Positions 36,936 to 63,500 of a stretch of DNA of 64,000 nucleotides are shown in pieces. This DNA is from Phaeosaccion multiseriatum (Eukaryota; Protista; Ochrophyta, other classes): positions 4,092,001 to 4,156,000 of the forward strand of contig OZ218952.1 in the NCBI GenBank assembly GCA_965112735.1, read 5' to 3'. Position numbers and translations under genes: made by a program. Position 1 is the first letter of the stretch, and each line of letters starts with the position of its first letter. The notes below the pieces were generated by a model. The model saw only the letters and a list, made by a program, of their open reading frames with translations. It ran no database searches and was not told the DNA's origin.

Positions 36936-37817
36936 CTTTTGCGTGCGAATAGTCAGGAATACGAGCGAGAGGGCGAGGAAAAGGGGGGGAGGAGGCTTCA
37001 GACTTCATTGGAATTGGATCACCGAAGTGAGGAGGAAAGGAGAGTGGCCAAGAGGGTGATTTGGATCAGGCTCCGGCCGGTCTAACAAGACACAACCCAC
37101 TCCTCCCACAGTGGCAACAGCTTTGATCCGCGTCGCACCTCACTCACCTAGAATTCCCTCCCCTCTCCCTCTCGCCAAATTCTTCCGGGAGATATCCTCC
37201 AATATTACTTCCGACTTTAAAACTGCTGGCAGTCTCCCTGGTTGCTGCCTTGGTTTCTCTATAGTAAGAAAGTAGATGGGAGGAGTAAGGAGAGGGGAGG
37301 GGAAGGAGAGCAAAGGTCCTGATTTGAGAATCTGGGGCCCGAAAGTCTCACCGAAAAAAACGTTTGGAAATGAAAACCCGAAAAGCTCAGGCCCTTTCAG
37401 GAGGTACATTCAAAAACGGCTCCAGACGAGGGTTTCCGACCTTATTCTAAGCGGGTTTCCGAGACTGTATATGCGGTGAGTCTGGGAGGGCCCAAAGTCT
37501 CACCCTTACGTAAGGGAAAAATAGCCATCACCCCTAATATTAAGGGGTGTGGCGGTTCGGAGAGTTCACACTTGGGTTTATTACAGGGTTGGCATTTGAC
37601 TTGATTTAAGTATAGAAAAACGGCATGATGATTACGTAAGGTATCTGGCAAATATCGATATATTCGATTTTACATGTGCCATGCCTTTTTCGGAAGGAGG
37701 GTACAAAGTGCGTCCATGGACTCGTTACCCGCTCAACAAAAGAGTTGTATTTCTGACGCCTGGGATATCCTCGTTTGCTCACGGGCAAGAAATATGTGCG
37801 AAAATGAAAAGCACACA

Positions 37818-38183
37818 ATGGACTCCGAAGATTCACGGGTTACCATCTACATTCTGCGCCTGGAGCACGGGAAGTGGTATTAGGGCAAGACCTCCAATCT
37901 GGAAGACAGGTTCATCGCGCATCGGGAGGTGAAGGCGTCCACGTGGACGCGCATGCATCGCCCCCTGGAGATATCCCAAAAGTACGAAGGGTGCTGCCCC
38001 TTCGACGAGGACAAGTATACCCTAGTGGCCATGCACATGTACGGGATCAACAATGTCCGCGGGGCGTCCTACGTGCAATTGGTTCTGTCCAGGTCCCAGG
38101 TACTGGAGATTACGCAGCGGATTCGCATGGCGAGCGACAGATGCGCCCAGTGCGGGGAGGGCGGACACTTCATACGCGACTGC
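37818..38183 (+). pseudogene. GIY-YIG nuclease + CCHC zinc knuckle (giant-virus-like family), in-frame TAG and 3'-interrupted by an LTR
   Basis: Read-through gives MDSEDSRVTIYILRLEHGKWY*GKTSNLEDRFIAH..STWTRMHRP..DEDKYTL.AMHMYGINNVRGASY..DRCAQCGEGGHFIRDC; stop at 37881-37883; intronless. Confidence 0.8.
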
Positions 38184-38706
38184 TGTAGCGTCGGTGAGCC
38201 TTCGCTAACTTACTGTGACACACACTCTATGTCTCTTCACTCTCACTCCTGGTGAGGCAGAGACACTAAGGCTTTATTGCAAGAACGCGAGTAATTTATT
38301 CTTAGCATTACTGGTGGGTTTCCGAAACGTCATGAATGAGTGCTCTACTCCACAGTCCCCCTTTAAGAAGCTTGATAGGAAACTATCCTGTCGAGCTATA
38401 GGAAAAAAAGGAGGAAAAAACGAGTGAGAAGACATCGTGAGAAAAACGTGCGAAGGAAAACTCCAAACAAAACAAGAAAAAATATCACACACGCAGCTTG
38501 TGCATGTGCAACAGGTCACGTTTGACCGTGGGAGAGAGCTTCATCTTCCGGAGGTATTGCTGCATGGTAGCAACAGGCATATCCCCCATCAGTAGGTGAA
38601 GAGGCTCCCAAGTGCGTTCGTCGGCTTCAAAACCAAGCCAATGAACTAGAACTTCGTATTCACCTTGTTCCTTGTGGAGTGTGACGAAGGAGTCGATCTG
38701 ATACTT
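38184..38706 (-). mobile_element. 3' remnant of a chromodomain-bearing Ty3/Gypsy LTR retrotransposon (chromodomain 38485-38706, PPT, 171-bp LTR 38184-38354)
   Basis: Mirror of 52680-53201. Confidence 0.75.
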
Positions 38707-38896
38707 TGCCAGGCTATCTGAGCCGTGCTCACGCCCCTCCTCTCTTCTTCTCTACCCCCTTACTCCCTTTCTGGCTTGAGAAGCTGGACGTTCTGGCCTC
38801 ACGCGGCAGTGTCAGCTTCAGTTTCAGAGGCAACCCCCCCCTCCTTTCGAAAGTCAGAGAATCAGTGACTTACTAAGCCTGACTGACTTCAGATAC

Positions 38897-41800
38897 TCAG
38901 GTGAGAGACAGCCACACACGGACCTTGAGCCTCCCGTCGGTGCCAGGCTCGTCCATGAAGGCATTCCTCCGATGTGCCACAATGTGGTTGTTGGCAATGC
39001 CAATGTCTCCCCGCTTGAAGGCCTGATTGAAGCGACATTCTTCCCAAAGAGCCTTCTCGAGTTCAATAGTGGCAATTTGGGTGAGGGGCGACAGTTTGTA
39101 GCCAGCCTTGCGATGGCCACTCTCCAACCATTCCTGAATGAAGCGGAAACTCATTTGGCGAGAGGAGTCTCGGTAGTCGAAGATGGGGTAGCTGTTGAGA
39201 CGAATGCGCTGCCGAAGCACGGCCGGGGAGCGGGACAGGAGTAAGAAAAAGTCTTTCGGGTTGACACGGGACCCACTCCCGAAGCCTTCTACCCCACGCT
39301 CAAGGATGTCCCGGACGAGAGGCCTGCGGAGTTCGTAGAGGAGGAAAGCAGGCAGCCGATTCTGTAACCGATGCCAAGCGTTACACGCCGATGCCATTTG
39401 GAACTCTCCTCCCTGTGAGGCGGGGCGGACGCAGAGCAGTCCCACACAGTCAGGCATCCAGTCCCTGCTAGAGCCGTCCGTGTGCCAGCCGCACTCGCTG
39501 TTCACGGCCGAAAAGAGCACATTATCTTTGCTGGCGTCCAGGCCGCGATTGCGCACCTGGTGTGCATCGAAGCACGCGAGGCGGGGAGGGAGGGGCGGGG
39601 CAGTCACGGGGGCAGGAGAGCAGCACAACGGACGAGAAGGAAGGAACGATCACCGTCAGTCAAAGGGATTTTGAAGCAGCCGGAAGAGAGTGAGTGTGGT
39701 GGGACGGAGGAAGGGACGAAGGGGGGCCAGGGAGGGGAAAGGGAAGGGAGCGAGGGAGTAAGGCAGACAGGTAGGCAGGAGGGCAGACAAGCAGCAATAG
39801 GAAAGCGTTTGGAATTGTGGACAGCAAAGCCCGCAAGCAACCCGGACGGTGGGCGGGGGGGTGTCAGAACAGTGGGTGGGGTGAGCGTGTGGGCGACACT
39901 CACGTCGAATAGACGGCCACGCGTGTCGTTTATCTTGGCCACGGAGCTGGCGAGGATGAAAAAGCACAGCTTGGCGAACTTCTCCCGGTGGAGCTCATCC
40001 GTCTCGTGCATGCTGTCTATGTCGAGGCCCCGAATCAGAATGTTGCCCGACTTGACCATGAGCTGCTTGGCGACAAAGTATCCGAATCGTCGCGTCTCAG
40101 CCAGGGGCCACACGTCCCCTGGGGTATAAGTCTCATGGTCGATGCCCTTGGCCAGCAGAGCACGCGCAGATCCATACAACTCGTCAAGCACCCCTTGCGG
40201 CAGGTGCAGCACAAACTCCGAGTCGCGCAGCATTTCGTTCCAGATGACCTCCTGTGGCGGCAGCATGAACTTGACGCTGGAGGCAAGGGCGGGCAGGATG
40301 CGTCCATCGGCACCCCGGCTACACAAAATGCGGTCGATCTCCTCGTCCGTGGTGTCGGTACCCAAGGCACCGTCCGTGCCGGCCTGCTCCAGGGCCACAG
40401 TTTTTCGCGCACCAATGCACATGTGAAGGGGTACCCCTTCCAAGGGCGCAAAGAAGTCGGAACTCGCCGCCAGGGTGGAGTCCACGGTGAGCTCCTTCAC
40501 CATCGGCGCGGTCGTGAAGCCCACTTCCTGCAGGAAGTTGAAATAGTCTTCCACCCTCTGTCGGGTTGTTGTTGCCGTTTTGTGTGTGTGCGTGCGTTCG
40601 TGTGTGTTGTTGTGGGCGTCTCAGTCTCAGTTTGTACCCGACAAATCAATCGAGGAGCGGTCTTTGTGCTGAAAGTGGGCGTGTTGGTTTTACAGGTCGG
40701 AGGTCAACAGGGTGGAGGGCAGTAGAAACAAGAGGAACAGGTGCTGCACGCATCCACACAAACGCGCACACACGCACAAACGCATGCAGAAGCATGCATA
40801 CACACATGTATACACACACACACGTACACGCACGCACCTTGTGGAAGTTCCGCACGTTGAGGCTGCCGCCGTCGGTTCTGTAGATCTTTCCCTCGAGGCA
40901 TTGGTCCATAGCGTTAAAGTAGTTCTGCTGCTCGGTGGGGCGCTTCCAATGGAAAGGAGGAACGTGCTCTCGCTGCCACCAGGGGGAACATGGGTGGGGC
41001 ACCGAGAAGATGAAGTGTCCTCCGTCCTTTAGCAGCCGCTGGACGTCGTGACCAACCTGAGTCGGGCGGGCGGGCAGGGGTTGCGGTGGTGGTGGGGGTG
41101 GTTGTGGATGTGGTGAGCTGGTGAGAGGGGCGACCGGGAGAGGCGCCGTGCGAGTGAGTGCCCGTCAATAGGTACGATGTGATGTGCGGGAATGTGTGCT
41201 TGTGTGGGAGGAGAGGCAGTTGGGGGGGTGGCGATGTAAAAGGACCACAGGTACGAGCCTTCATACAGGTCTTCCTTGACGACCCGACCGAGCAACATGA
41301 GGAGACATGTGACAGCGCGCACGCACACACACACACCAACACACACACCCAAACACATGCGCGCACGCACACACGCACTCTCGCACACGCACACAAACAC
41401 GTATACACACGCACACACACGCGCACACGCACACACACACACACACACGCACATACATACACACACACACGCACATACATACACAAACACGCAAAGACAT
41501 ACACACCCTACCTGCTTCATATCCTCGATGGTCATGTAGTTGAAGAGGAACACGGCGACAATAACGTCGAACGATTCCTCAATGGTTTGGAACTGTCGCC
41601 CGAGCAACCCTGCCTCTCTTTGTAGCGTCTGGACGAGGCTGCGGGAGTCGCCTGCCACATACTTGATATTGCCCAGGGGTGAAGCCTCCTCCGCGGCTTT
41701 GGCTTTTTCAATCATATCGGAAGAGATATCGATGCCGATGATGTCTTTCGCCCCCATCTCCGAGAGAATACGTGCACAGTATCCCTCGCCACAGCCCACG

Positions 41801-44800
41801 TCCAAGACGGAGGCTCCCTGAATGAAAGGCTTGCACATGTTGAAGAGGGCAGGGCGGCCGGTGAAGTCCGAAAGGCAGGAGGGCTCACGTCTTGCCCATG
41901 CGTTGCTCTGCTCATCGTACAGCTCGGACACGCTCTTGCCTGCGGTGGCCTCGCTGAACAAGCCTTGGGCTCCTCCTCCCCCTGCCCCGTCCTTCTCATC
42001 GACACCACCAATACCCTTTCCCTCCTTCACAGACACCGCGGGTGCGAGCGGGCATCCACTGCCATCGCCCCCACCTTTTCCCATGGCCGCACAAGGCGCG
42101 GAGGACTTGCCTTTTTCAGCCTCGGCCTTGGCTTCTCCTAGAGCCTCTGTGATGGCGAATGGACAGCCCCCTCCCACCGGCGGGCGCGGGAGTGGCGGCG
42201 ACACCGCCGAGGGCGAGTTCGACTCCGGGTCCACAGGCATCTTGTTAGCCCGCGCCAGCAGGCCATCCCACATGACGGACCGCGCTCTCAACGCAAGCTT
42301 TGCCCCACGGAACACGGCCTCTCGCGCCTCCTTGTCGTTCCCGGTGAGCTTCACGACAACATTCAGCAAGGTGGTCCCGTGCTCATCATCGCAGATGGTG
42401 TGCAGAGGGAAGAAGACGAAGGCCTGCTCGTCTCCGAAGACCTGTTTGAGCCCGCTGTAAATGAGCGGGTAAATGACTGGCACGAGCAGCTCTGCCCCGT
42501 ACGCGAAGGCCCCCAGCGCTTGATGTGGAGAGGACTCTGCGATTTCGGTCATGGTCTTGGTGAAGACATCTCCAGGGCCCTCCTCCTGCCCTCCTCCTCT
42601 TTCTCCTCCCTCCTTCTTGGTATCATCTCCCCCCGTGGCCCTCTCCGTCACGAGTTTGACGAGATTCTCAAACAGCTCGGTGTGAGGAATACCGTCGAAG
42701 GAGGCAACTGAATAGCCCTTCGCTTGTAGTTTGAGGCTCGCCTCGGGATCTACCAGCCCTTCCTCCTCCTTCTGATCGCTTTCGACCATGTCACGGAGCT
42801 CTGCAGGTGGGGTTAGGGCAAGGACGACACGGGACAAGGAGAGGGGAGGGGGAGAAGGAGGGGGGGGCGGAGGGAGAAGAAGGGGGGGTGGAGGAGGGGG
42901 GGGGCGGGAGACGGAGACGGAGACAAGGGAGAGGGAGAGACAGAGGCGAAAGGGAGAGGGATGGAGAGGGAGAGGTAGAGGGGAGATGGAGAGGGAGAGC
43001 AGAAGGAGACAGGGAAGGGAGAGGGGGAGGGCGGGGATTAGAGGGGAGAGGGAGAGGGAGGGGAAATGGAGAGGGAGAAGGGGGGGAAGTGGAGAGGGAG
43101 AGGGGAGACGGAGAGGGAGAGCAGACGGGAGAAGGAGACAAGGAAGGGAGAGGAAGAGAGGGCGGCCATGACAAGGTGGGATTTGCCGTAATCATCACAC
43201 GGGTCAAGGAGGATGAGGACTGCAGCACTGCTGCAGAGTTTCGTGTCGGTATTGTAACAGACACAAAAGGCAGGGTTTGATAGAGTGGTGGAGGGGGAAA
43301 CAGCCTGTACATTGTACATTCACTCACTCACTCTGTCTCTCTCTCTCTCACACACACGTGCTCACTCTCTCTCTGTCTCTCACACACGCCCACAGACACA
43401 CGCGCGCACACCCAACCAAACAAGCGCATGAACACACACACGTTTTTACACCCTTACACACACTCACACATACACACAATTTTCCACCCTCACACACACA
43501 CACTCATACACACACACATTTACACGCCCACGCACACACACACACAACACACACGCATCTGCTTTGCGTCCACCTCCTCCTCACTCTCCTCCCCTCGCCC
43601 AAGGCAATGCTATCCATGGCAGCGTACCTGGGCAAGCCATTTGGCTCGTGATTTTCTTGCTGAGCTCAAGGAAGCTGCGCGAGTACTTGCGATACTCTGT
43701 CACAAAGTCGAGGCACGCCCTTCGCGGGTGCATGAAGCTTGTTCCTCTACCGAACCGCTTGAGGTACTCGTGCGTGCTGGCCGGGTGGTGCAGTCCCGCT
43801 CTCAGGACGTAGTCGGCGAACGCTTCCCCCGTGGTGACTTCAGGGTTGAGATACGGCTGGTCCTGTCCGTATTCGACCATCCTTCCCACCGCCAGATTAG
43901 GGCTTGGAGTGGGTGGTGAATGTGGTCGGTGGGTTTGGCGGTGTGGATTGGTGGTGGTGGGGGTGGTGGCAGTGGTCGTGGCAAGGGGCGGTGTGTGGTG
44001 GAAATGGCGATAGTGGCGGAGGCAGTCGTCGGTGGTGGTGGTGGTGGTGGTGGCGGTTGTGGTGGCGATGATGGTGGCGGCAGTGGATGAAGAGACCGAG
44101 CGTAGGGAAGAAACAACGAAACAACACACAGAAATAAGCACAACAAGCGCAAGCGCAACAACATCCACAAGAAGAAACCACCAACCATCACTACACAGCC
44201 ACCGCAGTCAGTCATTCAGTCATTCAGTCTGACCACCCACCCACCCATCGTGCAACTGCAGGAGGGGGCAGGGTCAGCAGGCTGCCACTTACTCGTTTAG
44301 GAGGTCCTTACGCTCACTCGCGGTCATCATGGTGTAGTAGATGAGGTCAAAGAGCGTGGTCCACTGCTTCTTCTCCTCTTGTGAAATGTCCACTGGCATG
44401 GCTTTAAAGAAGCTGGTGAGGAGGGAGTGGAAATGCTCTTGCGTAACGCCCATCTCAATGTGCTTGACACCCAGGCGCTGCAGGCGGGGAATCCACTCCT
44501 CAAAGGACTCCAAAGAGTAGACGATCTGCTGGAGGAGGAGGAACACAGGCTTGACGTTGGCATTGAGGTTGGCATTGAAGAGCGGGATGGTCTCCGGGTG
44601 CGACTTGAAGAGGTTGCCCAGCCAATGCCGGGAGAAGCGCAGCAGCTCGTCCGGGTCTTCCCAGCACTTCATGACGCGGTCCAGGCTGTGCTCGAGCGAA
44701 GACTGGTCGAGATTGTGGGCAATGTACGTCTTCTCTTGATTGGTCTTGTTCTTGACTTCACTGTCGGGTGTGCTGATACCCTTCATTTGCATAAAGGCCG

Positions 44801-45518
44801 AGGTATCCCACTTGAGAACGGCGGCTGTGGAGGAGTGTATGTGTGAACAAGAAATCATGTGGTGGAGGATGGGTGGGGCGTGGGAGAAGAAGGGGCTTGA
44901 GTCGAAATGCGCCGCCCACCTATGGACCAACAACAAAGACAGCGCATCTCGAGATGTCGACGACCTCTCAGCATGGCAATGGCGCGGGCCGGAGAAGCCC
45001 CCCCCCCCTCTTCTCTACCGACCTGCAAATTCATCGAAGTCAAGCTCGCCATTGCCGTCCAGATCAACAGCCGCAAACACCGCGGCAGCAAACTCAGCGT
45101 CCATGTCCTTCGTCCCGCCAGGCACAAAGTCCAGATTGCCCCGCTCGAATGCGTCCGCCATGTCCTGGGCCGTGAAGACTCCCTGGCCCCTAACATCGAA
45201 GGCCTTGAACATCTCGCGAACGAGCATCAGCAAGGCGAACTCGTCACCCTCCCGCTCGTACTCGCTCAGACTGTACATCTCCACGAGCTGCGCACGCGAA
45301 AGCGATGTCACATGGGCGGCCTTCTTCCCCTCCTCCACTTCCACCCCACAAAACCCCACCCACTCGGCCCACATGTTCTCTGCGGCCTCATCGGTCCAGC
45401 TCAGGGCCGCCAAGAGGGACATGAACTTGGCCTTCTGCACGGCCCATCCGTCTTGGTCGCCCAACAGGTAGAGAAGGTCATCAAGGCACGAAGAGGGGGA
45501 CAGAGATGCCGCGGACAT
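38897..45518 (-). CDS. Intact five-module fusion protein (~1374 aa): EF-hand - globin - heme-oxygenase-like diiron oxidase (CADD/TenA/PqqC fold) - class I SAM methyltransferase - TauD/CAS-like Fe(II)/2OG dioxygenase
   Basis: Exons 45023-45518, 44293-44824, 43628-43902, 41512-42800, 40838-41056, 39904-40557 and 38897-39556 total 4125 nt, all GT-AG and phase-compatible. Motifs: [12 protein letters not shown]; [27 protein letters not shown]; [20 protein letters not shown]; [22 protein letters not shown]; [20 protein letters not shown]. Confidence 0.85.
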
Positions 45519-45663
45519 GTTGTTTTGACAAACTCAAGCAAAAGCGTGCTTTTCCCAGCTCAAGTCCGCTGCACGAGGCGTGCTGCACAAGCAAGGCGTC
45601 AGACCGTGCTGATAAATTGCTCAGGTCCTGTTGGTCTTCGATACCGGTCTTCTTCGCCACTTA

Positions 45664-45750
45664 CCCGTCGTCTCGACCAGCAAATCTACACCTGCAATTG
45701 TGAGCTTAAACTGGAACTGAAATTTCCTTCGTGGTACCTTTTACCTTATC
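45664..45750 (-). promoter_or_regulatory. 87-bp unique palindrome spacer; probable core promoter and non-coding first exon of the left copy
   Basis: The minus strand has an Inr-like TTTCAGTTCCAGTTT (45708-45722), followed by a consensus donor G|GTAAGT at 45665/45664, with no ATG in between. Confidence 0.5.
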
Positions 45751-45895
45751 TAAGTGGCGAAGAAGACCGGTATCGAAGACCAACAGGACCTGAGCAATTT
45801 ATCAGCACGGTCTGACGCCTTGCTTGTGCAGCACGCCTCGTGCAGCGGACTTGAGCTGGGAAAAGCACGCTTTTGCTTGAGTTTGTCAAAACAAC

Positions 45896-48800
45896 ATGTC
45901 CGCGGCATCTCTGTCCCCCTCTTCGTGCCTTGATGACCTTCTCTACCTGTTGGGCGACCAAGACGGATGGGCCGTGCAGAAGGCCAAGTTCATGTCCCTC
46001 TTGGCGGCCCTGAGCTGGACCGATGAGGCCGCAGAGAACATGTGGGCCGAGTGGGTGGGGTTTTGTGGGGTGGAAGTGGAGGAGGGGAAGAAGGCCGCCC
46101 ATGTGACATCGCTTTCGCGTGCGCAGCTCGTGGAGATGTACAGTCTGAGCGAGTACGAGCGGGAGGGTGACGAGTTCGCCTTGCTGATGCTCGTTCGCGA
46201 GATGTTCAAGGCCTTCGATGTTAGGGGCCAGGGAGTCTTCACGGCCCAGGACATGGCGGACGCATTCGAGCGGGGCAATCTGGACTTTGTGCCTGGCGGG
46301 ACGAAGGACATGGACGCTGAGTTTGCTGCCGCGGTGTTTGCGGCTGTTGATCTGGACGGCAATGGCGAGCTTGACTTCGATGAATTTGCAGGTCGGTAGA
46401 GAAGAGGGGGGGGGGGCTTCTCCGGCCCGCGCCATTGCCATGCTGAGAGGTCGTCGACATCTCGAGATGCGCTGTCTTTGTTGTTGGTCCATAGGTGGGC
46501 GGCGCATTTCGACTCAAGCCCCTTCTTCTCCCACGCCCCACCCATCCTCCACCACATGATTTCTTGTTCACACATACACTCCTCCACAGCCGCCGTTCTC
46601 AAGTGGGATACCTCGGCCTTTATGCAAATGAAGGGTATCAGCACACCCGACAGTGAAGTCAAGAACAAGACCAATCAAGAGAAGACGTACATTGCCCACA
46701 ATCTCGACCAGTCTTCGCTCGAGCACAGCCTGGACCGCGTCATGAAGTGCTGGGAAGACCCGGACGAGCTGCTGCGCTTCTCCCGGCATTGGCTGGGCAA
46801 CCTCTTCAAGTCGCACCCGGAGACCATCCCGCTCTTCAATGCCAACCTCAATGCCAACGTCAAGCCTGTGTTCCTCCTCCTCCAGCAGATCGTCTACTCT
46901 TTGGAGTCCTTTGAGGAGTGGATTCCCCGCCTGCAGCGCCTGGGTGTCAAGCACATTGAGATGGGCGTTACGCAAGAGCATTTCCACTCCCTCCTCACCA
47001 GCTTCTTTAAAGCCATGCCAGTGGACATTTCACAAGAGGAGAAGAAGCAGTGGACCACGCTCTTTGACCTCATCTACTACACCATGATGACCGCGAGTGA
47101 GCGTAAGGACCTCCTAAACGAGTAAGTGGCAGCCTGCTGACCCTGCCCCCTCCTGCAGTTGCACGATGGGTGGGTGGGTGGTCAGACTGAATGACTGAAT
47201 GACTGACTGCGGTGGCTGTGTAGTGATGGTTGGTGGTTTCTTCTTGTGGATGTTGTTGCGCTTGCGCTTGTTGTGCTTATTTCTGTGTGTTGTTTCGTTG
47301 TTTCTTCCCTACGCTCGGTCTCTTCATCCACTGCCGCCACCATCATCGCCACCACAACCGCCACCACCACCACCACCACCACCGACGACTGCCTCCGCCA
47401 CTATCGCCATTTCCACCACACACCGCCCCTTGCCACGACCACTGCCACCACCCCCACCACCACCAATCCACACCGCCAAACCCACCGACCACATTCACCA
47501 CCCACTCCAAGCCCTAATCTGGCGGTGGGAAGGATGGTCGAATACGGACAGGACCAGCCGTATCTCAACCCTGAAGTCACCACGGGGGAAGCGTTCGCCG
47601 ACTACGTCCTGAGAGCGGGACTGCACCACCCGGCCAGCACGCACGAGTACCTCAAGCGGTTCGGTAGAGGAACAAGCTTCATGCACCCGCGAAGGGCGTG
47701 CCTCGACTTTGTGACAGAGTATCGCAAGTACTCGCGCAGCTTCCTTGAGCTCAGCAAGAAAATCACGAGCCAAATGGCTTGCCCAGGTACGCTGCCATGG
47801 ATAGCATTGCCTTGGGCGAGGGGAGGAGAGTGAGGAGGAGGTGGACGCAAAGCAGATGCGTGTGTGTTGTGTGTGTGTGTGCGTGGGCGTGTAAATGTGT
47901 GTGTGTATGAGTGTGTGTGTGTGAGGGTGGAAAATTGTGTGTATGTGTGAGTGTGTGTAAGGGTGTAAAAACGTGTGTGTGTTCATGCGCTTGTTTGGTT
48001 GGGTGTGCGCGCGTGTGTCTGTGGGCGTGTGTGAGAGACAGAGAGAGAGTGAGCACGTGTGTGTGAGAGAGAGAGAGACAGAGTGAGTGAGTGAATGTAC
48101 AATGTACAGGCTGTTTCCCCCTCCACCACTCTATCAAACCCTGCCTTTTGTGTCTGTTACAATACCGACACGAAACTCTGCAGCAGTGCTGCAGTCCTCA
48201 TCCTCCTTGACCCGTGTGATGATTACGGCAAATCCCACCTTGTCATGGCCGCCCTCTCTTCCTCTCCCTTCCTTGTCTCCTTCTCCCGTCTGCTCTCCCT
48301 CTCCGTCTCCCCTCTCCCTCTCCACTTCCCCCCCCCCTTCTCCCTCTCCATTTCCCCTCCCTCTCCCTCTCCCCTCTAATCCCCGCCCTCCCCCTCTCCC
48401 TTCCCTGTCTCCTTCTGCTCTCCCTCTCCATCTCCCCTCTACCTCTCCCTCTCCATCCCTCTCCCTTTCGCCTCTGTCTCTCCCTCTCCCTTGTCTCCGT
48501 CTCCGTCTCCCTCCCCCCCCCCTCCTCCACCACCCCTTCTTCTCCCTCCGCCCCCCCCTCCTTCTCCCCCTCCCCTCTCCTTGTCCCGTGTCGTCCTTGC
48601 CCTAACCCCACCTGCAGAGCTCCGTGACATGGTCGAAAGCGATCAGAAGGAGGAGGAAGGGCTGGTAGATCCCGAGGCGAGCCTCAAACTACAAGCGAAG
48701 GGCTATTCAGTTGCCTCCTTCGACGGTATTCCTCACACCGAGCTGTTTGAGAATCTCGTCAAACTCGTGACGGAGAGGGCCACGGGGGGAGATGATACCA

Positions 48801-51800
48801 AGAAGGAGGGAGGAGAAAGAGGAGGAGGGCAGGAGGAGGGCCCTGGAGATGTCTTCACCAAGACCATGACCGAAATCGCAGAGTCCTCTCCACATCAAGC
48901 GCTGGGGGCCTTCGCGTACGGGGCAGAGCTGCTCGTGCCAGTCATTTACCCGCTCATTTACAGCGGGCTCAAACAGGTCTTCGGAGACGAGCAGGCCTTC
49001 GTCTTCTTCCCTCTGCACACCATCTGCGATGATGAGCACGGGACCACCTTGCTGAATGTTGTCGTGAAGCTCACCGGGAACGACAAGGAGGCGCGAGAGG
49101 CCGTGTTCCGTGGGGCAAAGCTTGCGTTGAGAGCGCGGTCCGTCATGTGGGATGGCCTGCTGGCGCGGGCTAACAAGATGCCTGTGGACCCGGAGTCGAA
49201 CTCGCCCTCGGCGGTGTCGCCGCCACTCCCGCGCCCGCCGGTGGGAGGGGGCTGTCCATTCGCCATCACAGAGGCTCTAGGAGAAGCCAAGGCCGAGGCT
49301 GAAAAAGGCAAGTCCTCCGCGCCTTGTGCGGCCATGGGAAAAGGTGGGGGCGATGGCAGTGGATGCCCGCTCGCACCCGCGGTGTCTGTGAAGGAGGGAA
49401 AGGGTATTGGTGGTGTCGATGAGAAGGACGGGGCAGGGGGAGGAGGAGCCCAAGGCTTGTTCAGCGAGGCCACCGCAGGCAAGAGCGTGTCCGAGCTGTA
49501 CGATGAGCAGAGCAACGCATGGGCAAGACGTGAGCCCTCCTGCCTTTCGGACTTCACCGGCCGCCCTGCCCTCTTCAACATGTGCAAGCCTTTCATTCAG
49601 GGAGCCTCCGTCTTGGACGTGGGCTGTGGCGAGGGATACTGTGCACGTATTCTCTCGGAGATGGGGGCGAAAGACATCATCGGCATCGATATCTCTTCCG
49701 ATATGATTGAAAAAGCCAAAGCCGCGGAGGAGGCTTCACCCCTGGGCAATATCAAGTATGTGGCAGGCGACTCCCGCAGCCTCGTCCAGACGCTACAAAG
49801 AGAGGCAGGGTTGCTCGGGCGACAGTTCCAAACCATTGAGGAATCGTTCGACGTTATTGTCGCCGTGTTCCTCTTCAACTACATGACCATCGAGGATATG
49901 AAGCAGGTAGGGTGTGTATGTCTTTGCGTGTTTGTGTATGTATGTGCGTGTGTGTGTGTATGTATGTGCGTGTGTGTGTGTGTGTGTGCGTGTGCGCGTG
50001 TGTGTGCGTGTGTATACGTGTTTGTGTGCGTGTGCGAGAGTGCGTGTGTGCGTGCGCGCATGTGTTTGGGTGTGTGTGTTGGTGTGTGTGTGTGCGTGCG
50101 CGCTGTCACATGTCTCCTCATGTTGCTCGGTCGGGTCGTCAAGGAAGACCTGTATGAAGGCTCGTACCTGTGGTCCTTTTACATCGCCACCCCCCCAACT
50201 GCCTCTCCTCCCACACAAGCACACATTCCCGCACATCACATCGTACCTATTGACGGGCACTCACTCGCACGGCGCCTCTCCCGGTCGCCCCTCTCACCAG
50301 CTCACCACATCCACAACCACCCCCACCACCACCGCAACCCCTGCCCGCCCGCCCGACTCAGGTTGGTCACGACGTCCAGCGGCTGCTAAAGGACGGAGGA
50401 CACTTCATCTTCTCGGTGCCCCACCCATGTTCCCCCTGGTGGCAGCGAGAGCACGTTCCTCCTTTCCATTGGAAGCGCCCCACCGAGCAGCAGAACTACT
50501 TTAACGCTATGGACCAATGCCTCGAGGGAAAGATCTAACTTCCACAAGGTGCGTGCGTGTACGTGTGTGTGTGTATACATGTGTGTATGCATGCTTCTGC
50601 ATGCGTTTGTGCGTGTGTGCGCGTTTGTGTGGATGCGTGCAGCACCTGTTCCTCTTGTTTCTACTGCCCTCCACCCTGTTGACCTCCGACCTGTAAAACC
50701 AACACGCCCACTTTCAGCACAAAGACCGCTCCTCGATTGATTTGTCGGGTACAAACTGAGACTGAGACGCCCACAACAACACACACGAACGCACGCACAC
50801 ACACAAAACGGCAACAACAACCCGACAGAGGGTGGAAGACTATTTCAACTTCCTGCAGGAAGTGGGCTTCACGACCGCGCCGATGGTGAAGGAGCTCACC
50901 GTGGACTCCACCCTGGCGGCGAGTTCCGACTTCTTTGCGCCCTTGGAAGGGGTACCCCTTCACATGTGCATTGGTGCGCGAAAAACTGTGGCCCTGGAGC
51001 AGGCCGGCACGGACGGTGCCTTGGGTACCGACACCACGGACGAGGAGATCGACCGCATTTTGTGTAGCCGGGGTGCCGATGGACGCATCCTGCCCGCCCT
51101 TGCCTCCAGCGTCAAGTTCATGCTGCCGCCACAGGAGGTCATCTGGAACGAAATGCTGCGCGACTCGGAGTTTGTGCTGCACCTGCCGCAAGGGGTGCTT
51201 GACGAGTTGTATGGATCTGCGCGTGCTCTGCTGGCCAAGGGCATCGACCATGAGACTTATACCCCAGGGGACGTGTGGCCCCTGGCTGAGACGCGACGAT
51301 TCGGATACTTTGTCGCCAAGCAGCTCATGGTCAAGTCGGGCAACATTCTGATTCGGGGCCTCGACATAGACAGCATGCACGAGACGGATGAGCTCCACCG
51401 GGAGAAGTTCGCCAAGCTGTGCTTTTTCATCCTCGCCAGCTCCGTGGCCAAGATAAACGACACGCGTGGCCGTCTATTCGACGTGAGTGTCGCCCACACG
51501 CTCACCCCACCCACTGTTCTGACACCCCCCCGCCCACCGTCCGGGTTGCTTGCGGGCTTTGCTGTCCACAATTCCAAACGCTTTCCTATTGCTGCTTGTC
51601 TGCCCTCCTGCCTACCTGTCTGCCTTACTCCCTCGCTCCCTTCCCTTTCCCCTCCCTGGCCCCCCTTCGTCCCTTCCTCCGTCCCACCACACTCACTCTC
51701 TTCCGGCTGCTTCAAAATCCCTTTGACTGACGGTGATCGTTCCTTCCTTCTCGTCCGTTGTGCTGCTCTCCTGCCCCCGTGACTGCCCCGCCCCTCCCTC

Positions 51801-52489
51801 CCCGCCTCGCGTGCTTCGATGCACACCAGGTGCGCAATCGCGGCCTGGACGCCAGCAAAGATAATGTGCTCTTTTCGGCCGTGAACAGCGAGTGCGGCTG
51901 GCACACGGACGGCTCTAGCAGGGGCTGGATGCCTGACTGTGTGGGACTGCTCTGCGTCCGCCCCGCCTCACAGGGAGGAGAGTTCCAAATGGCATCGGCG
52001 TGTAACGCTTGGCATCGGTTACAGAATCGGCTGCCTGCTTTCCTCCTCTACGAACTCCGCAGGCCTCTCGTCCGGGACATCCTTGAGCGTGGGGTAGAAG
52101 GCTTCGGGAGTGGGTCCCGTGTCAACCCGAAAGACTTTTTCTTACTCCTGTCCCGCTCCCCGGCCGTGCTTCGGCAGCGCATTCGTCTCAACAGCTACCC
52201 CATCTTCGACTACCGAGACTCCTCTCGCCAAATGAGTTTCCGCTTCATTCAGGAATGGTTGGAGAGTGGCCATCGCAAGGCTGGCTACAAACTGTCGCCC
52301 CTCACCCAAATTGCCACTATTGAACTCGAGAAGGCTCTTTGGGAAGAATGTCGCTTCAATCAGGCCTTCAAGCGGGGAGACATTGGCATTGCCAACAACC
52401 ACATTGTGGCACATCGGAGGAATGCCTTCATGGACGAGCCTGGCACCGACGGGAGGCTCAAGGTCCGTGTGTGGCTGTCTCTCACCTGA
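45896..52489 (+). pseudogene. Second copy of the five-module fusion gene, frameshifted in exon 5 (would end at ~922 aa)
   Basis: Exons 45896-46391, 46590-47121, 47512-47786, 48618-49906, 50362-50548, 50829-51482, 51830-52489. The 32 nt present at 40850-40881 are missing, which creates ATC TAA at 50533-50538. Confidence 0.8.
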
Positions 52490-52679
52490 GTATCTGAAGT
52501 CAGTCAGGCTTAGTAAGTCACTGATTCTCTGACTTTCGAAAGGAGGGGGGGGTTGCCTCTGAAACTGAAGCTGACACTGCCGCGTGAGGCCAGAACGTCC
52601 AGCTTCTCAAGCCAGAAAGGGAGTAAGGGGGTAGAGAAGAAGAGAGGAGGGGCGTGAGCACGGCTCAGATAGCCTGGCA

Positions 52680-53201
52680 AAGTATCAGATCGACTCCTTC
52701 GTCACACTCCACAAGGAACAAGGTGAATACGAAGTTCTAGTTCATTGGCTTGGTTTTGAAGCCGACGAACGCACTTGGGAGCCTCTTCACCTACTGATGG
52801 GGGATATGCCTGTTGCTACCATGCAGCAATACCTCCGGAAGATGAAGCTCTCTCCCACGGTCAAACGTGACCTGTTGCACATGCACAAGCTGCGTGTGTG
52901 ATATTTTTTCTTGTTTTGTTTGGAGTTTTCCTTCGCACGTTTTTCTCACGATGTCTTCTCACTCGTTTTTTCCTCCTTTTTTCCTATAGCTCGACAGGAT
53001 AGTTTCCTATCAAGCTTCTTAAAGGGGGACTGTGGAGTAGAGCACTCATTCATGACGTTTCGGAAACCCACCAGTAATGCTAAGAATAAATTACTCGCGT
53101 TCTTGCAATAAAGCCTTAGTGTCTCTGCCTCACCAGGAGTGAGAGTGAAGAGACATAGAGTGTGTGTCACAGTAAGTTAGCGAAGGCTCACCGACGCTAC
53201 A
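52680..53201 (+). mobile_element. 3' remnant of a chromodomain-bearing Ty3/Gypsy LTR retrotransposon (chromodomain 52680-52901, PPT 53021-53030, LTR 53031-53201)
   Basis: ATG-less frame KYQIDSFVTLHKEQGEYEVLVHWLGFEADERTWEPLHLLMGDMP..YL (chromodomain), then AAAGGGGGAC directly followed by a 171-bp TGT...ACA segment containing AATAAA. Confidence 0.75.
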
Positions 53202-53567
53202 GCAGTCGCGTATGAAGTGTCCGCCCTCCCCGCACTGGGCGCATCTGTCGCTCGCCATGCGAATCCGCTGCGTAATCTCCAGTACCTGGGACCTGGACAG
53301 AACCAATTGCACGTAGGACGCCCCGCGGACATTGTTGATCCCGTACATGTGCATGGCCACTAGGGTATACTTGTCCTCGTCGAAGGGGCAGCACCCTTCG
53401 TACTTTTGGGATATCTCCAGGGGGCGATGCATGCGCGTCCACGTGGACGCCTTCACCTCCCGATGCGCGATGAACCTGTCTTCCAGATTGGAGGTCTTGC
53501 CCTAATACCACTTCCCGTGCTCCAGGCGCAGAATGTAGATGGTAACCCGTGAATCTTCGGAGTCCAT
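53202..53567 (-). pseudogene. GIY-YIG + CCHC pseudogene, right-arm copy
   Basis: Mirror of 37818-38183, including the same in-frame TAG (53502-53504). Confidence 0.8.
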
Positions 53568-54203
53568 TGTGTGCTTTTCATTTTCGCACATATTTCTTGC
53601 CCGTGAGCAAACGAGGATATCCCAGGCGTCAGAAATACAACTCTTTTGTTGAGCGGGTAACGAGTCCATGGACGCACTTTGTACCCTCCTTCCGAAAAAG
53701 GCATGGCACATGTAAAATCGAATATATCGATATTTGCCAGATACCTTACGTAATCATCATGCCGTTTTTCTATACTTAAATCAAGTCAAATGCCAACCCT
53801 GTAATAAACCCAAGTGTGAACTCTCCGAACCGCCACACCCCTTAATATTAGGGGTGATGGCTATTTTTCCCTTACGTAAGGGTGAGACTTTGGGCCCTCC
53901 CAGACTCACCGCATATACAGTCTCGGAAACCCGCTTAGAATAAGGTCGGAAACCCTCGTCTGGAGCCGTTTTTGAATGTACCTCCTGAAAGGGCCTGAGC
54001 TTTTCGGGTTTTCATTTCCAAACGTTTTTTTCGGTGAGACTTTCGGGCCCCAGATTCTCAAATCAGGACCTTTGCTCCCGTTACCCATACCTACCTCTCC
54101 AATGAGGAAGGACGAGCGAGCTGTGTCGCCGCTTCAATGAGAAAGGACGAGAAAAACGGGCCGTGAAAAGCTCCACCAGCTCTTCCAACACGAGCGAACA
54201 AAC

Positions 54204-57562: not shown

Positions 57563-60500
57563 ATGAAGAAATCTCTTCTCCCAGGGCTTGTGCTTCTGGT
57601 CGGGTTGGCGGCGGCCAGCGACAGGAGCGACAGCGGGTATCCTGCAGGAAAGAGAAGCCTCAGGGGGGCATCCATTTCGGCCGAACAAGCCCACGAACAA
57701 AGCCGGGTGCATCGTCCCGCCCTCAGGGGAGCATCGATTCCGGTCGTGGAGCAAACCCAAACGAAGTATAAGGCCTGCACTTCCCACAGCAGAGCGCCCT
57801 CCGCCGCCTCGAAGCTGCGGCGGGATCTAGGCTCCGAAGCGATAGGCGAGGTGAGGAGTAGAGGGGAAGGCGCAAGCTGCGTCTACCACAAAGCGAGACA
57901 TTCGTCCTTAGACCATCCCGCTCTCCGTAGCATGTCCTGCTGGAGTTAACTCATCCCTCTTCAAATTCGCTCCCCGCTGCTTGTTGGCCCTCGCTCGGGA
58001 ACCTCCTGACGTCGTTCGAGGGATGCCACAAGGTGTCCTTCAGTGATCCTAGTCGGGACGTGGCGTGCTTCACCGTCTTTGCCCCCGTGGAGTACGGCCA
58101 ATCCCTGCTCGCCCTCCCCCAAGAGAAGGACCTGAACAGGTAGGTGTGTGTTTGTGTGTGGTAGGGACTAAGAGACGCACGACTAGACTTCGCTGGGCGC
58201 TCTCGCTGCTCCTGCTGCCTTGGTGCCTCCGCTCTAGTCTCCAGCGTACGATTCTTACGATGTCTCCGTCCCCCTCGGCTAATACAACTTGGCCTGACTG
58301 GCTGGCTCACTTGCCTCGCTCTTTGATTTTCCGCCATACTGCTCCGGGTCTATCGCAGCGTTGAGACCCTCCCCAAGGGCCGCCACTCCTTACGCAAGCT
58401 TCAACTGTAAGTGCGTGGAATTGTAATTGGGGTTGGGATAGCTAAGCACGACTGCGAGTAACGAATAGCACCGCGAATAGCACCGGTCGATCAGTGTTGT
58501 GGTGCGTACGTAGCTACACAATTATCTCGGCGGGGGGGGGGCGTTCCGCTTTGCAATGTAAAGTGTGCGTCCTTTTGTTTCCTCCCCTCGACCGCTGCTC
58601 GCTCCTCTACCCGGCCCCTGCTTGCCTGACCCTCTCCTCGCCCCTCCCCTTGTCCTCCGCTGTCGTACCCTCGTGTCTTGCGCCTGCAGCGGGGACACAG
58701 AAACCATCACCGTGGACTTTGACGTCATCCTCACTATCCATGATGACTTTATGGGCGACGATGACGGCGACGATGACGGCGACGACGACAACAACGACTA
58801 CAACGACGACTACAGCAACTACAAGTACAACGACGGCACCGACAGTGGAAGTGGAAGGGGTCTTCTGCGTCGGCTGGCGGAGGGGGATGTGCCTACCTCA
58901 GACTTAAGTGAAGGTCTTCAGGGATTCTTGGACGATGAAGCACAGGACGTGGCGGATGTTGTGAGCGCTGATGACTACAGCGTCCAAGACTTGTCCATGG
59001 TCGAGATGGCCGACATCGATAGCCTCGCCGACACGACGTCTTACAGTGTGAGCTTCGGAATGGTCTTCGTCGTACCCGCGAGCGTGGATGCCCAAGATTC
59101 AGCGGGACAGCTCATCATCAGCAGCATGGTGGACGCATTTGCGGATTTTAGAGAAGATACTGGAGGCGCCGTCGACCTTACCATTGTGAGTGCCAGCACC
59201 CGCGCACCCACTGAGACCGTCACCATCACCATCGACTATGAAGGCAGCCTCATCCTTTCCGTCGATAACGTACTTCCGTCTGAGTTGGATGCGGCTCTTA
59301 GGAGCTTCGTGGAAGACATGGCAGAACTTGTGGCGGACGCCTTGGACACGATAGCAGAGGCGGTGGTGGGCACTTACGGTCCTGTTGACTACGCTGTCCA
59401 AGACTTCTCCATGGTCGAGACGGCCGACGCCAACAACCTCCCCGACACGACGTATTGCAGTCTGAGCTACACAATGGCCTTCATCGTGCCCGCGGGTATT
59501 GATCCCGACCCGGCAGGACTCGTCTTCAGCACCACGGAGACCATCAAGCAGTCAATTGTGGATCAGGTCAACAATGACATCATCAATTATACCTTTGTCA
59601 GCACCGCGCTCCATTCTGCCCCAACACCGGTGTCATTTCCAGCGTCTTTTTCAGACACTGGTGCGCCAACACCGGCGCCAGCTTTCGATGAAGTATCGTT
59701 TCCATCCACTTCCTGGGAGACCTTTGCGCCAACAAGTGCACCAACACCGACGCCAGCGTCCTTTCTGTGAGTACTCCCCGCCTCTGTCGAGGGTCTGTAA
59801 GCACTATGATGGGGTTAATAGGTGTATCAGGTGCATACATGGACTAGCACATGGGTTTAGGGGCGCAGCGGTGATTTCAGTTTCAGTTTCGATAGGGACT
59901 CCTCTGTTTGCCCCACCCCCGCCCGACTGTCGTTCGCTCCTCGCCCTCCTCCGTCATGCTCTCCTCATCTCGAGGGCTAAAAGGGTGACCCTTTGCAGAG
60001 TGTGCGTCCCTTTGCTTGCCCATCTCGACCGCTGCTCGCTCCTCTACCCGGCCCCTGCTTGCCTGACCCTCTCCTCACCCCTCCCCTTGTCCTCCGATGT
60101 CGTACCCTCGTGTCTTGCGCCTGCAGCGGGGACACAGAAACCATCACCGTGGACTTTGACGTCATCGTCAATGTCCATGACGACTTTATGGGCGACGATG
60201 ACGGCGACGACGACTTCAGCAACTACAATGACGACTACTACAACGACGGCAGGAGTGGCAGAAGGGGTCTTCTGCGTCGGCTGGCGGAGGGGGATGCGCC
60301 TACCTCCGACTTGAGTAAAGAGCTTCAGCTCTTCCTAGACGATGAAGCACGGGATATGGCGGGTGTTGTGAGCGCTGTGGACTACAGCGTTCAAGACTTC
60401 TTCATGGTCGAGACGGCCGACATCGATGGCCTCCCCGACACGACATCTTACAGTGTGAGCTTCGCCATGGTCTTCACTGTGCCTGTGGGCGTTGACACCA

Positions 60501-63500
60501 ACTCAGCCGGAGGGCTCGTGGTCAGTAGCATGGCAGAGATACTTGGGAATGTCGGAGAAGCGACTCAAGGCGCCGTCGAGGTTACCATTGTGACTGCCAG
60601 CACCCGCGCACCCATTGAGCCCGACACCATCACCATCAGCGTCGACATTGAAACCCTTGTCAACCTTCACGACGACGCCGGACCTTCGGATGAAGTGGAG
60701 CGTCGGCTGGCGGAGGGAGATGCACCCCCCGTAGCCATCAGCGCCGCTGTTGGGGGCCTCTTGGACACGATAGCAGAGGCGGTGGGAGATGCCTTGGACG
60801 AGATCACTTCCGGCGCTGCTGCCGTCGGCGTTGAAAGCTTCTCCATGGTCGAGACGGCCGACGCCGACGGCCTCCCCGACACGACGTCTTACCGTCTGAG
60901 CTACACAATGGTCTTCGTCGTGCCCGCGGGTATTGATCCCGACCCGGCAGACCTCGTCGTCACCACCACGGTCATGGTCCAGGAGTCAATTGTGGATCAG
61001 ATGGAAGGGGTCGAGGTTGCCATGATCAGTGCCACCCCCTCTGTACTCACCGCTACCCCAACACCGGTGTCATTGCCAGCGTCATTTTCAGACACTGGTG
61101 CGCCAACACCGGCGCCAGCTTTCGATGAAGTATCGTTTCCATCCACTTCCTGGGAGACCTTTGCGCCAACAAGTGCGCCAACACCGACGCCAGCGTCCTA
61201 TCTGTGAGTACTCCCCCGCCTCTGTCGAGGGTCTGTAAGCACTGTGATGAGGCTAATAGGTGTATCAGGTGCATACATGGACTAGCACACGGGTTTAGGG
61301 GCGCAGCGGTGATTTCAGTTTCAGTTTCGATAGGGACTCCTCTGTTTGCCCCACCCCCGCCCGACTGTCGCTCGCTCCTCGCCCCCCCTCCGTCATGCTC
61401 TCCTCATCTCGAGGGCTAAAAGGGTGACCCTTTGCAGAGTGTGCGTCCCTTTGCTTGCCCCTCTCGACCGCTGCTCGCTCCTCTACCCGGCCCCTGCTTG
61501 CCTGACCCTCTCCTCGCCCCTCCCCTTGTCCTCCGCTGTCGTACCCTCGTGTCTTGCGCCTGCAGCGGGGACACAGAAACCATCACCGTGGACTTTGACG
61601 TCATCGTCAATGTCCATGGTGACTTTATGGGCGACGATGACGGCCACGACGACTTCAGCAACTACAATGACGACTACTACAACGACGGCAGGAGTGGCAG
61701 AAGGGGTCTTCTGCGTCGGCTGGCGGAGGGGGATGCGCCTACCTCCGACTTGAGTAAAGAGCTTCAGCTCTTCCTAGACGATGAAGCACGGGATATGGCG
61801 GGTGTTGTGAGCGCTGTGGACTACAGCGTTCAAGACTTCTTCATGGTCGAGACGGCCGACATCGATGGCCTCCCCGACACGACATCTTACAGTGTGAGCT
61901 TCGCCATGGTCTTCACTGTGCCTGTGGGCGTTGACACCAACTCAGCCGGAGGGCTTGTGGTCAGTAGCATGGCAGAGATACTTGGGAATGTCGGAGAAGC
62001 GACTCAAGGCGCCGTCGAGGTTACCATTGTGACTGCCAGCACCCGCGCACCCATTGAGCCCGACAACATCACCATCAGCGTCGACATTGAAACCCTTGTC
62101 AACCTTCACGACGACGCCGGACCTTCGGATGAAGTGGAGCGTCGGCTGGCGGAGGGAGATGCACCCCCCGTAGCCATCAGCGCCGCTGTTGGGGGCCTCT
62201 TGGACACGATAGCAGAGGCGGTGGGAGATGCCTTGGACGAGATCGCTTCCGGCGCTGCTGCCGTCGGCGTTGAAAGCTTCTCCATGGTCGAGACGGCCGA
62301 CGCCGACGGCCTCCCCGACACGACGTCTTACCGTCTGAGCTACACAATGGTCTTCGTCGTGCCCGCGGGTATTGATCCCGACCCGGCAGACCTCGTCGTC
62401 ACCACCACGGTCATGGTCCAGGAGTCAATTGTGGATCAGATGGAAGGGGTCGAGGTTGCCATGATCAGTGCCACCCCCTCTGTACTCACCGCTACCCCAA
62501 CACCGGTGTCATTGCCAGCGTCATTTTCAGACACTGGTGCGCCAACACCGGCGCCAGCTTTCGATGAAGTATCGTTTCCATCCACTTCCTGGGAGACCTT
62601 TGCGCCAACAAGTGCGCCAACACCGACGCCAGCGTCCTATCTGTGAGTACTCCCCCGCCTCTGTCGAGGGTCTGTAAGCACTGTGATGAGGCTAATAGGT
62701 GTATCAGGTGCATACATGGACTAGCACACGGGTTTAGGGGCGCAGCGGTGATTTCAGTTTCAGTTTCGATAGGGACTCCTCTGTTTGCCCCACCCCCGCC
62801 CGACTGTCGCTCGCTCCTCGCCCCCCTCCGTCATGCTCTCCTCATCTCGAGGGCTAAAAGGGTGACCCTTTGCAGAGTGTGCGTCCCTTTGCTTGCCCCT
62901 CTCGACCGCTGCTCGCTCCTCTACCCGGCCCCTGCTTGCCTGACCCTCTCCTCGCCCCTCCCCTTGTCCTCCGCTGTCGTACCCTCGTGTCTTGCGCCTG
63001 CAGCGGGGACACAGAAACCATCACCGTGGACTTTGACGTCATCGTCAATGTCCATGATGACTTTATGGGCGACGATGACGGCCACGACGACTTCAGCAAC
63101 TACAATGACGACTACTACAACGACGGCAGGAGTGGCAGAAGGGGTCTTCTGCGTCGGCTGGCGGAGGGGGATGCGCCTACCTCCGACTTGAGTAAAGAGC
63201 TTCAGCTCTTCCTAGACGATGAAGCACGGGATATGGCGGGTGTTGTGAGCGCTGTGGACTACAGCGTTCAAGACTTCTTCATGGTCGAGACGGCCGACAT
63301 CGATGGCCTCCCCGACACGACATCTTACAGTGTGAGCTTCGCCATGGTCTTCACTGTGCCTGTGGGCGTTGACACCAACTCAGCCGGAGGGCTCGTGGTC
63401 AGTAGCATGGCAGAGATACTTGGGAATGTCGGAGAAGCGACTCAAGGCGCCGTCGAGGTTACCATTGTGACTGCCAGCACCCGCGCACCCATTGAGCCCG

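Follow-up and report, generated by a model that had tools for sequence, protein, structure and literature searches.

The 64,000-nucleotide stretch of Phaeosaccion multiseriatum DNA considered here (contig OZ218952.1, positions 4,092,001 to 4,156,000, referred to below as the window, in whose 64-kb coordinates all positions are given) raises the question of whether a series of open reading frames (ORFs) on its minus strand, from position 45518 to position 38897, belongs to a single gene for a single multidomain enzyme and, if so, how much of that enzyme's architecture is peculiar to this organism. A reading of the DNA made without database searches, which we call the sequence-only reading, had joined these ORFs through six GT-AG introns into one frame of 1374 residues that carries EF-hands, a globin, a heme-oxygenase-like diiron oxidase (HDO), an S-adenosylmethionine (SAM)-dependent methyltransferase (MT) and a TauD-type, 2-oxoglutarate (2OG)-dependent dioxygenase.

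We report a follow-up analysis in which the gene model was rebuilt, its domains were compared with profile and structure collections and its relatives were sought amongst eukaryotic, bacterial and environmental sequences. The locus is probably one gene, a globin-insertion variant of a widespread and uncharacterised family of EF-hand/HDO/MT/TauD enzymes. That the seven exons form one gene for a single polypeptide we hold to be quite likely, and the full explanation that we favour, which takes in one nuclear gene, a multidomain enzyme, its domain order, its relationship to a bacterial gene cassette and the mechanism proposed below, we hold to be likely, with slightly less assurance. The observation made in the sequence-only reading is confirmed, and its interpretation is partly supported.

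Gene model and domain content

Rebuilding the minus-strand model reproduced the earlier one exactly: seven exons and six GT-AG introns, the latter 198-827 nt long and in phases 1, 2, 1, 0, 0 and 0, give 4125 nt of coding sequence for 1374 residues and a stop codon. The spliced protein was examined by script and exon by exon, with Pfam run on the raw, unspliced ORFs. Exons 3 to 7, which encode the HDO, MT and TauD domains, are confirmed because about 20 full-length homologues align colinearly with the model from about residue 357 to residue 1373 and cross the junctions of introns 3 to 6 without a gap, a fit that, judged from these alignments, goes beyond chance.

Exon 3 (43628-43902, residues 343-434) provides the N-terminal part of the HDO and contains an ATG at 43880 (M351) that is a rival start codon. 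It is followed by the TG- and CT-rich intron 3 (42801-43627; 827 nt, phase 1), whose junction 16 homologues cross gap-free, and by exon 4 (41512-42800, residues 435-864), which carries the ligand-bearing helices of the HDO, a Gly/Ala-rich linker and motifs I-III of the MT. Intron 4 (41057-41511; 455 nt, phase 0), with its TG microsatellite, separates this exon from exon 5 (40838-41056, residues 865-937), in which lies the MT core (GG-F-FSVPHP); intron 5 (40558-40837; 280 nt, phase 0) leads into exon 6 (39904-40557, residues 938-1155), where the C-terminus of the MT meets the N-terminal half of TauD; and intron 6 (39557-39903; 347 nt, phase 0) precedes exon 7 (38897-39556, residues 1156-1374 and the TGA stop), which holds the TauD core. 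Each of the junctions of introns 4, 5 and 6 is confirmed by homologue alignment. Introns 3 and 4 consist mostly of TG/CA microsatellite and CT-rich low-complexity runs (41300-41510, 43340-43580 and 42840-43170).

At the other end of the gene, exon 1 (45023-45518, residues 1-165) opens with an ATG at 45518-45516, six codons downstream of an in-frame stop, and encodes an N-terminal region, a degenerate EF loop and a canonical one. Intron 1 (44825-45022; 198 nt, GT..AG, phase 1), the codon usage of which is non-coding in every frame, is followed by exon 2 (44293-44824, residues 166-342), made up of a 40-residue linker and the globin (about residues 206-342). Intron 2 (43903-44292; 390 nt, GTAAGT..AG, phase 2) is the one that decides between one gene and two; a second in-phase acceptor in it would begin exon 3 at 43881.

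All five modules that the sequence-only reading had assigned were found by Pfam on the raw ORFs (EF-hand, Globin, Haem_oxygenas_2/DUF3050, a class I methyltransferase and TauD), with scores that all exceed the respective gathering thresholds, and the HDO and globin folds, for which that reading had named profile searches as a test, are thereby supported. Its statement that the key metal- and SAM-binding residues are intact also holds: residue conservation was scored over 17 aligned family members, and each of the diiron, SAM and TauD residues given below occupies a column that at least 88% of them conserve. NCBIfam has no specific family for any of the domains.

The EF-hand region (residues 101-165) scores 35.1 bits with EF-hand_1 and 34.7 bits with EF-hand_7 (E 7e-9). 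In its canonical loop (residues 152-163), positions 1, 3, 5 and 12 are occupied by D, D, N and E; the partner loop, at residues 108-119, is degenerate, and the pair is predicted to bind Ca2+. In the exon 4 ORF the HDO reaches 35.0 bits with PF14518 (Haem_oxygenas_2; cut-off 28.9) and 36.3 bits with PF11251 (DUF3050; cut-off 22.2). The residues E447, H474, E538, H568, D572 and H575 form the diiron ligand set E, H, E, HxxxDxxH, which shows no variation in the family alignment A1 and aligns with H88, E142 and the HxxxDxxH motif of CADD; the centre is predicted to bind two iron ions and to activate O2.

A family HDO profile run against the PDB gives CADD (CT610, the Chlamydia 4-aminobenzoate synthase; E 7.5e-13) and BesC (4-chloro-allylglycine synthase; E 1.6e-10) as its best matches, with all six metal ligands aligned. 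These matches agree with the earlier assignment of the HDO to the CADD-type superfamily and support a place for it in the CADD/BesC branch. The family departs from CADD in an insert of about 20-25 residues between the first Glu and the first His ligands. Furthermore, in a profile alignment to the CADD structure 1rcw, Tyr27 corresponds to a conserved Leu (L390 in the window protein) and Lys152 to a hydrophobic residue (I548), and these two CADD residues are the ones which we take to be consumed by that enzyme. Since their positions are occupied in this way, the family is predicted not to be a self-sacrificing enzyme of the CADD type.

The MT is matched by Methyltransf_25 (E 2.6e-14), and its SAM motif D768-G770-x-G772-E-G (VLDVGCGEG) lies on invariant columns; the best PDB match of the family MT profile is the N-methyltransferase ToxA (8rdl, E 2.3e-24), followed by phosphoethanolamine N-methyltransferases. 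TauD (PF02668, E 1.2e-16, in exon 7) likewise has its iron triad, H1180-x-D1182 and H1350, together with R1364 and R1368, on invariant columns, and the structure nearest to the family TauD profile is the phosphonate hydroxylase FrbJ (5eqn, E 5e-24), followed by gamma-butyrobetaine hydroxylase (BBOX).

The enzyme family and its bacterial cassette

When 1.84 billion representative proteins were searched by HMMER with exon 4 as the query, about 30 of them, 800-1250 residues long, matched both its HDO half and its MT half, and both HDO-MT-TauD and EF-hand-HDO-MT-TauD proteins of 950-1250 residues are numerous. Some members come from transcriptomes of eukaryotes, those of the diplonemid Lacrimia lanifica and of one other EukProt assembly, and others lie on intron-poor, eukaryote-like contigs. 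The view that no protein of this architecture had been described thus survives for the globin only, which no other long homologue has. We found no study of the HDO-MT-TauD cassette in the searchable literature, whether by domain combination, by DUF3050/PF14518 or by PDB entry 7N7V.

Amongst the closest known counterparts of the window protein are EF-hand-HDO-MT-TauD proteins, for example those from Microseira sp. BLCC-F43 and Brasilonema angustatum, from environmental sequence (P0005 and P0002) and from a EukProt transcript (P0010), which share its domain order and catalytic residues, are 33-45% identical to it across HDO, MT and TauD and have their EF-hands directly upstream of the HDO. Unlike the window protein, none of them has a globin, and the cyanobacterial proteins have four EF loops against its single canonical one. 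In Microseira sp. BLCC-F43 (L042:3631-6783) and Brasilonema angustatum (L041:3622-6771) the whole is a single ORF of about 1050 residues in the order EF(x4)-HDO-MT-TauD. In the cultured strain Microseira wollei NIES-4236 (L043 3255-6786) the gene is split into three ORFs of 251, 153 and 634 residues, which may reflect a pseudogene or frameshift errors. Because cyanobacteria encode EF-HDO-MT-TauD as one ORF, the EF-hand is not a eukaryotic addition, and the idea that it was a eukaryotic input module joined to the enzyme after transfer has to be given up.

In bacteria, scanned at one genome per species, 42 loci have an orthologous TauD gene, whose product matches the eukaryotic domain profile at 37% identity (E 4e-47). 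In nearly all of them the gene immediately before TauD encodes the MT, so that the adjacency of bacterial homologues that the sequence-only reading had proposed as a check is indeed found, and the order HDO-MT-TauD is seen in about 20. The three-gene HDO-MTase-TauD operon from which that reading had derived the gene is therefore right as to the cassette and its order, and less so as to the number of genes, since HDO and MT often form one bacterial gene and the cassette is often an HDO-MT fusion plus TauD or a single gene, and not always three genes.

The cassette is present in Bacteroidota, Planctomycetota, Cyanobacteria and some Proteobacteria, and altogether in at least five bacterial phyla and many protists, in which EF-hands frequently accompany it. 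Examples from a Ferruginibacter metagenome-assembled genome (L003/L007) and Aliikangiella maris (L008), and from Chitinophagaceae, Flavobacteriales, Planctomycetota and Leptolyngbyaceae, have orthologous domains in the same order as the window protein, and their TauD shares motifs with it that include FRYMRxWIE(S/T)GHxKA; they differ from it in that the genes are separate or partly fused and most are without EF-hand or globin. In some Bacteroidota the cassette has as recurrent neighbours a GNAT acetyltransferase (13 loci) and an alpha/beta hydrolase (8 loci), for example at L030 2714-3373 and L022 5489-6298, a hint that the pathway includes acylation or deacylation.

In a TauD tree which, being unrooted, gives no direction of transfer between bacteria and eukaryotes, the cyanobacterial fusions sit between a clade of unfused bacterial sequences and a clade of eukaryotic and environmental ones. 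The window protein, colinear with the family over residues 357-1373, nests within the fused clade. The first reading is corrected in that both the fusion and the EF-hand are old features which bacteria have too, and it is the globin alone that is specific to the lineage, as far as the relatives found here indicate.

HDOs that act alongside a SAM methyltransferase, a mononuclear-iron enzyme or both on an amino-acid-derived substrate are familiar from SznE/SznF and HrmI/HrmJ. The family of the window protein follows the same pairing logic, a likeness that rests on established knowledge of those systems; no specific sequence relationship to SznF, SznE or HrmJ was found, the nearest structures being CADD/BesC, ToxA and FrbJ.

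The N-terminal exons and the globin

The junctions that join the EF-hand and the globin to the enzyme lie upstream of the region covered by the homologues, and introns 1 and 2 are predicted to be spliced on other grounds. In the proposed frame, exons 1 and 2 give a codon-usage log-likelihood ratio of +0.66 bits per codon, which is negative in the other frames; their codon usage, that of the 40-residue linker included, resembles the confirmed exons, and the six introns are non-coding in all frames. Left unspliced, the EF-hand stops after 'EFAGR', whereas splicing gives it the exit helix EF-AAAV-L, which fits the family pattern EFxxxxL; the splicing of intron 1 is supported because this helix is complete only when exon 1 is joined to exon 2. 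In P0002, P0005, P0010, P0015, P0022 and others, as well as in the cyanobacterial single ORFs, an EF-hand pair also precedes the HDO by 20-30 residues, and this favours one gene, since an unrelated EF-hand gene would have the same site and strand only by coincidence.

Two variants of the model were considered and rejected. A splice from exon 1 to exon 3 that skips the globin was ruled out by the lack of an in-phase acceptor near exon 3, and, as exon 1 is thus unable to join exon 3 in frame, the EF-hand can be retained only by way of the globin exon. That the Gly/Ala-rich linkers conceal further, in-frame introns was likewise ruled out, the codon usage there being coding in frame.

Further evidence comes from the nearest relative, P0003 (JGI metagenome 3300081624, contig L049). 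In the TauD tree it forms a sister pair with the window protein, at an SH-aLRT (Shimodaira-Hasegawa-like approximate likelihood ratio test) support of 100, and it is 56-57% identical to that protein in TauD (57% between exon 7 and the C-terminus of P0003). Its ORF lies on a genomic, intron-free contig and, unlike the window gene, is truncated where it runs off the 5' edge. Residues 1-125 (L049 2-376) align colinearly with the window globin from the C to the H helices and are followed directly by the HDO; the pairwise alignment has an E of 1e-5 and a score of 85, against 31 +/- 5.5 for shuffled sequences, none of 1000 of which reached it. As P0003 has both in one continuous ORF, a globin-derived domain joined N-terminally to an HDO exists elsewhere.

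The globin of the window is recognised by Pfam in exon 2 (PF00042, 35 bits against a cut-off of 22). Its closest structures are bacterial single-domain globins, namely HGbI of Methylacidiphilum (PDB 3s1i, E 1.2e-7) and Vitreoscilla Hb; its CD1 Phe and proximal F8 His align with those of HGbI, and its distal positions B10 and E7 align with Leu and Asn where HGbI has Tyr and Gln. It is internal, between the EF-hand and the HDO (residues 206-342), and by profile, F8 His and CD1 Phe it fits a 3/3 globin that is predicted to bind heme. A word-indexed protein search with the globin ORF returned no relatives, the same search with the N-terminus of P0003 returned only P0003 itself, and two metagenome scans (with P0003 residues 1-330 and with the exon 7/P0003 alignment) gave pattern matches of which none was confirmed as a relative, so that no full-length globin-bearing relative was found in these protein and metagenome searches. 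The globin insertion alone looks new and specific to the lineage, the rest of the architecture being shared.

A number of observations weigh against this account. No transcript or protein of the source organism was found in any collection searched, and the function is read from distant structural relatives only. Phase compatibility at the two upstream introns is within chance, with two of nine donor/acceptor pairs compatible for intron 2 and seven of 28 for intron 1; an in-frame TAA (44291-44289) lies inside the GTAAGT donor of intron 2; and the ATG at 43880 has a good start context (A at -3, G at +4) and lies 6-13 codons before the HDO homology. The AlphaFold model of the globin exon, from a two-row alignment, is of low confidence (predicted local distance difference test score 46), and Foldseek run with this model returned only globins, at a weak E of about 0.01, so that no weight is placed on it. 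No other family member amongst the best 150 matches has a globin, and the N-terminal domain of P0003 is only 23% identical to that of the window protein, has Tyr at the position of the proximal His and, taken alone, matches neither Pfam Globin nor the PDB globins. Finally, the sister copy of the gene in the palindrome described below is broken, so the locus may be evolving quickly.

Because phase compatibility alone is not significant, the case for introns 1 and 2 rests on codon usage, on the completion of the EF-hand helix and on P0003, and the TAA at the intron 2 donor together with the good start context of the ATG at 43880 makes it possible to read the locus as two adjacent genes. One would be a 343-residue EF-hand-globin ending at the TAA and the other a 1024-residue HDO-MT-TauD protein starting at that ATG, with the 390-nt 'intron 2' as an intergenic spacer or a trans-splicing region; the start of HDO homology only at about residue 357 and the existence of HDO-MT-TauD proteins without EF-hands (P0011, P0021 and P0006, for example) agree with such a division. 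It would, however, require 3' untranslated region, promoter and 5' untranslated region to fit into about 410 nt of low-complexity sequence, which in length and composition is the same as the confirmed introns, and the GTAAGT that begins it is the best donor consensus of the six. Every homologue has at least about 20-50 residues before the HDO, the EF-hand immediately upstream repeats the architecture of the family, and P0003 combines the globin-derived domain and the HDO within one ORF. We consider two genes improbable.

If there is one gene, the globin need not be a working heme protein. It might be a heme-free relic that serves as a structural spacer or dimerisation module and has no sensing or redox role, a view consistent with the absence of any need for a globin in other family members, with the Leu and Asn of the window protein at B10 and E7 and with P0003, whose counterpart, with its Tyr at F8 and Val at CD1, can no longer be recognised as a globin; that lineage may have lost or modified heme binding, which may be dispensable in the clade. 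The window copy nevertheless retains the F8 His and the CD1 Phe and scores above the Pfam threshold, and its codon usage shows in-frame translation. We think the relic rather unlikely, though less so than two genes, and we are just as tentative about the opposite proposal, namely that the globin is a working heme domain which reports O2, NO or redox state, or passes electrons, to the diiron oxidase, with the EF-hand serving as a Ca2+-dependent gate on the enzyme.

The remaining rival concerns the assembly. The gene lies in an inverted duplication, which had gone unmentioned in the sequence-only reading, with arms of about 8.4 kb (37299-45663 and 45751-54086) that are nearly 100% identical and are separated by a unique central spacer of 87 nt (45664-45750). 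The second arm carries, on the plus strand at 45896-52489, an inverted duplicate of the whole gene (copy B), head-to-head with the gene described above (copy A) and with the two ATGs 377 nt apart. Copy B lacks, at 50538, 32 nt that correspond to 40849-40880 of copy A, which produces an in-frame TAA in exon 5, and it has an Asp-to-Gly change at 51924 (39462 in copy A), in a nearly invariant TauD column. Outside exon 5, the few differences in length between the arms all fall in the repeat runs of intron 3 or downstream of the gene.

Such long and nearly identical arms around so short a spacer, one of them with a disabling deletion, could suggest a fold-back chimera of the assembly or a decaying duplicate, in which case the gene as read would be absent from the genome. 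Set against this, both arms are flanked by unique sequence (37 kb and 10 kb), their differences, a clean 32-nt indel, one substitution and a few changes in repeat length, are unlike random read error, and copy A reads through its 4125 nt without disruption and is colinear with its homologues. The comparison of the arms argues for a real and recent duplication with one decaying copy rather than a fold-back artefact, and we regard the reading under which the gene does not exist as very unlikely indeed.

The window as a whole is eukaryotic nuclear DNA of about 58% GC, with introns rich in TG/CA and CT repeats. Ordinary nuclear genes flank the locus, encoding a protein with the C-terminal domain of Rav1p of the RAVE complex (59-4706, plus strand) and a GH85 endo-beta-N-acetylglucosaminidase (13632-15836, minus strand). 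From 58500 to 64000 a unit of about 1438 nt is repeated in tandem at least four times; the copies are 75-100% identical, and their ORFs of about 400 residues (58565-59770, 59993-61207 and 61432-62646) have no Pfam match. An Rfam tRNA match of 47 bits and 88 nt lies at 18210-18297 on the minus strand; ARAGORN finds no tRNA in the window, and the match may represent a tRNA gene that is unusual or interrupted by an intron.

Proposed mechanism and significance

We propose that the three catalytic domains are a eukaryotic, fused form of the bacterial cassette and would act on one small, probably amine-bearing metabolite. The HDO would carry out an O2-dependent diiron oxidation, either N-oxygenation or oxidative C-C cleavage or decarboxylation, the MT an N-methylation and TauD a 2OG-dependent C-H hydroxylation, whilst the fusion would hold the intermediates together; the nature and the order of these three steps are suggested by the nearest characterised relatives of each domain. 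Binding of Ca2+ to the EF-hands would most likely switch the activity. This lineage would have gained the globin between its EF-hand and its HDO, and the globin, with its proximal His and CD1 Phe retained, would most likely add a heme-based O2, NO or redox input beside a diiron site that depends on O2 and electrons.

Like the chimeric globins already known (flavohemoglobins, globin-coupled sensors and androglobin), the globin of the window is fused to other functional domains, and in androglobin a globin is coupled to Ca2+/calmodulin control (PMC7475203, PMC13696810). Globin-coupled sensors have an N-terminal, S-family globin with a signalling output, the outputs listed being chemotaxis, kinase, cyclase and gene-regulatory domains, with no biosynthetic oxygenases amongst them (PMC7475203). 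The window protein does not belong with these sensors: its globin is internal and nearest to F-family single-domain globins, and the enzymes downstream of it fall outside the listed output classes.

Should the globin bind heme, its partner would be a biosynthetic oxygenase and not a signalling domain, and the protein would offer a natural test case for the control of HDO chemistry by O2, NO or redox state. If the globin is indeed a working heme domain and the EF-hand a Ca2+ gate, which we hold only tentatively, P. multiseriatum would have on one polypeptide a pathway, gated by signals, to a methylated (on N) and hydroxylated metabolite whose core cassette is spread across aquatic bacteria and protists. 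Because that cassette occurs in at least five bacterial phyla and many protists, its product is likely to be a widespread small metabolite, which makes the family a tractable target for the discovery of both enzymes and metabolites.

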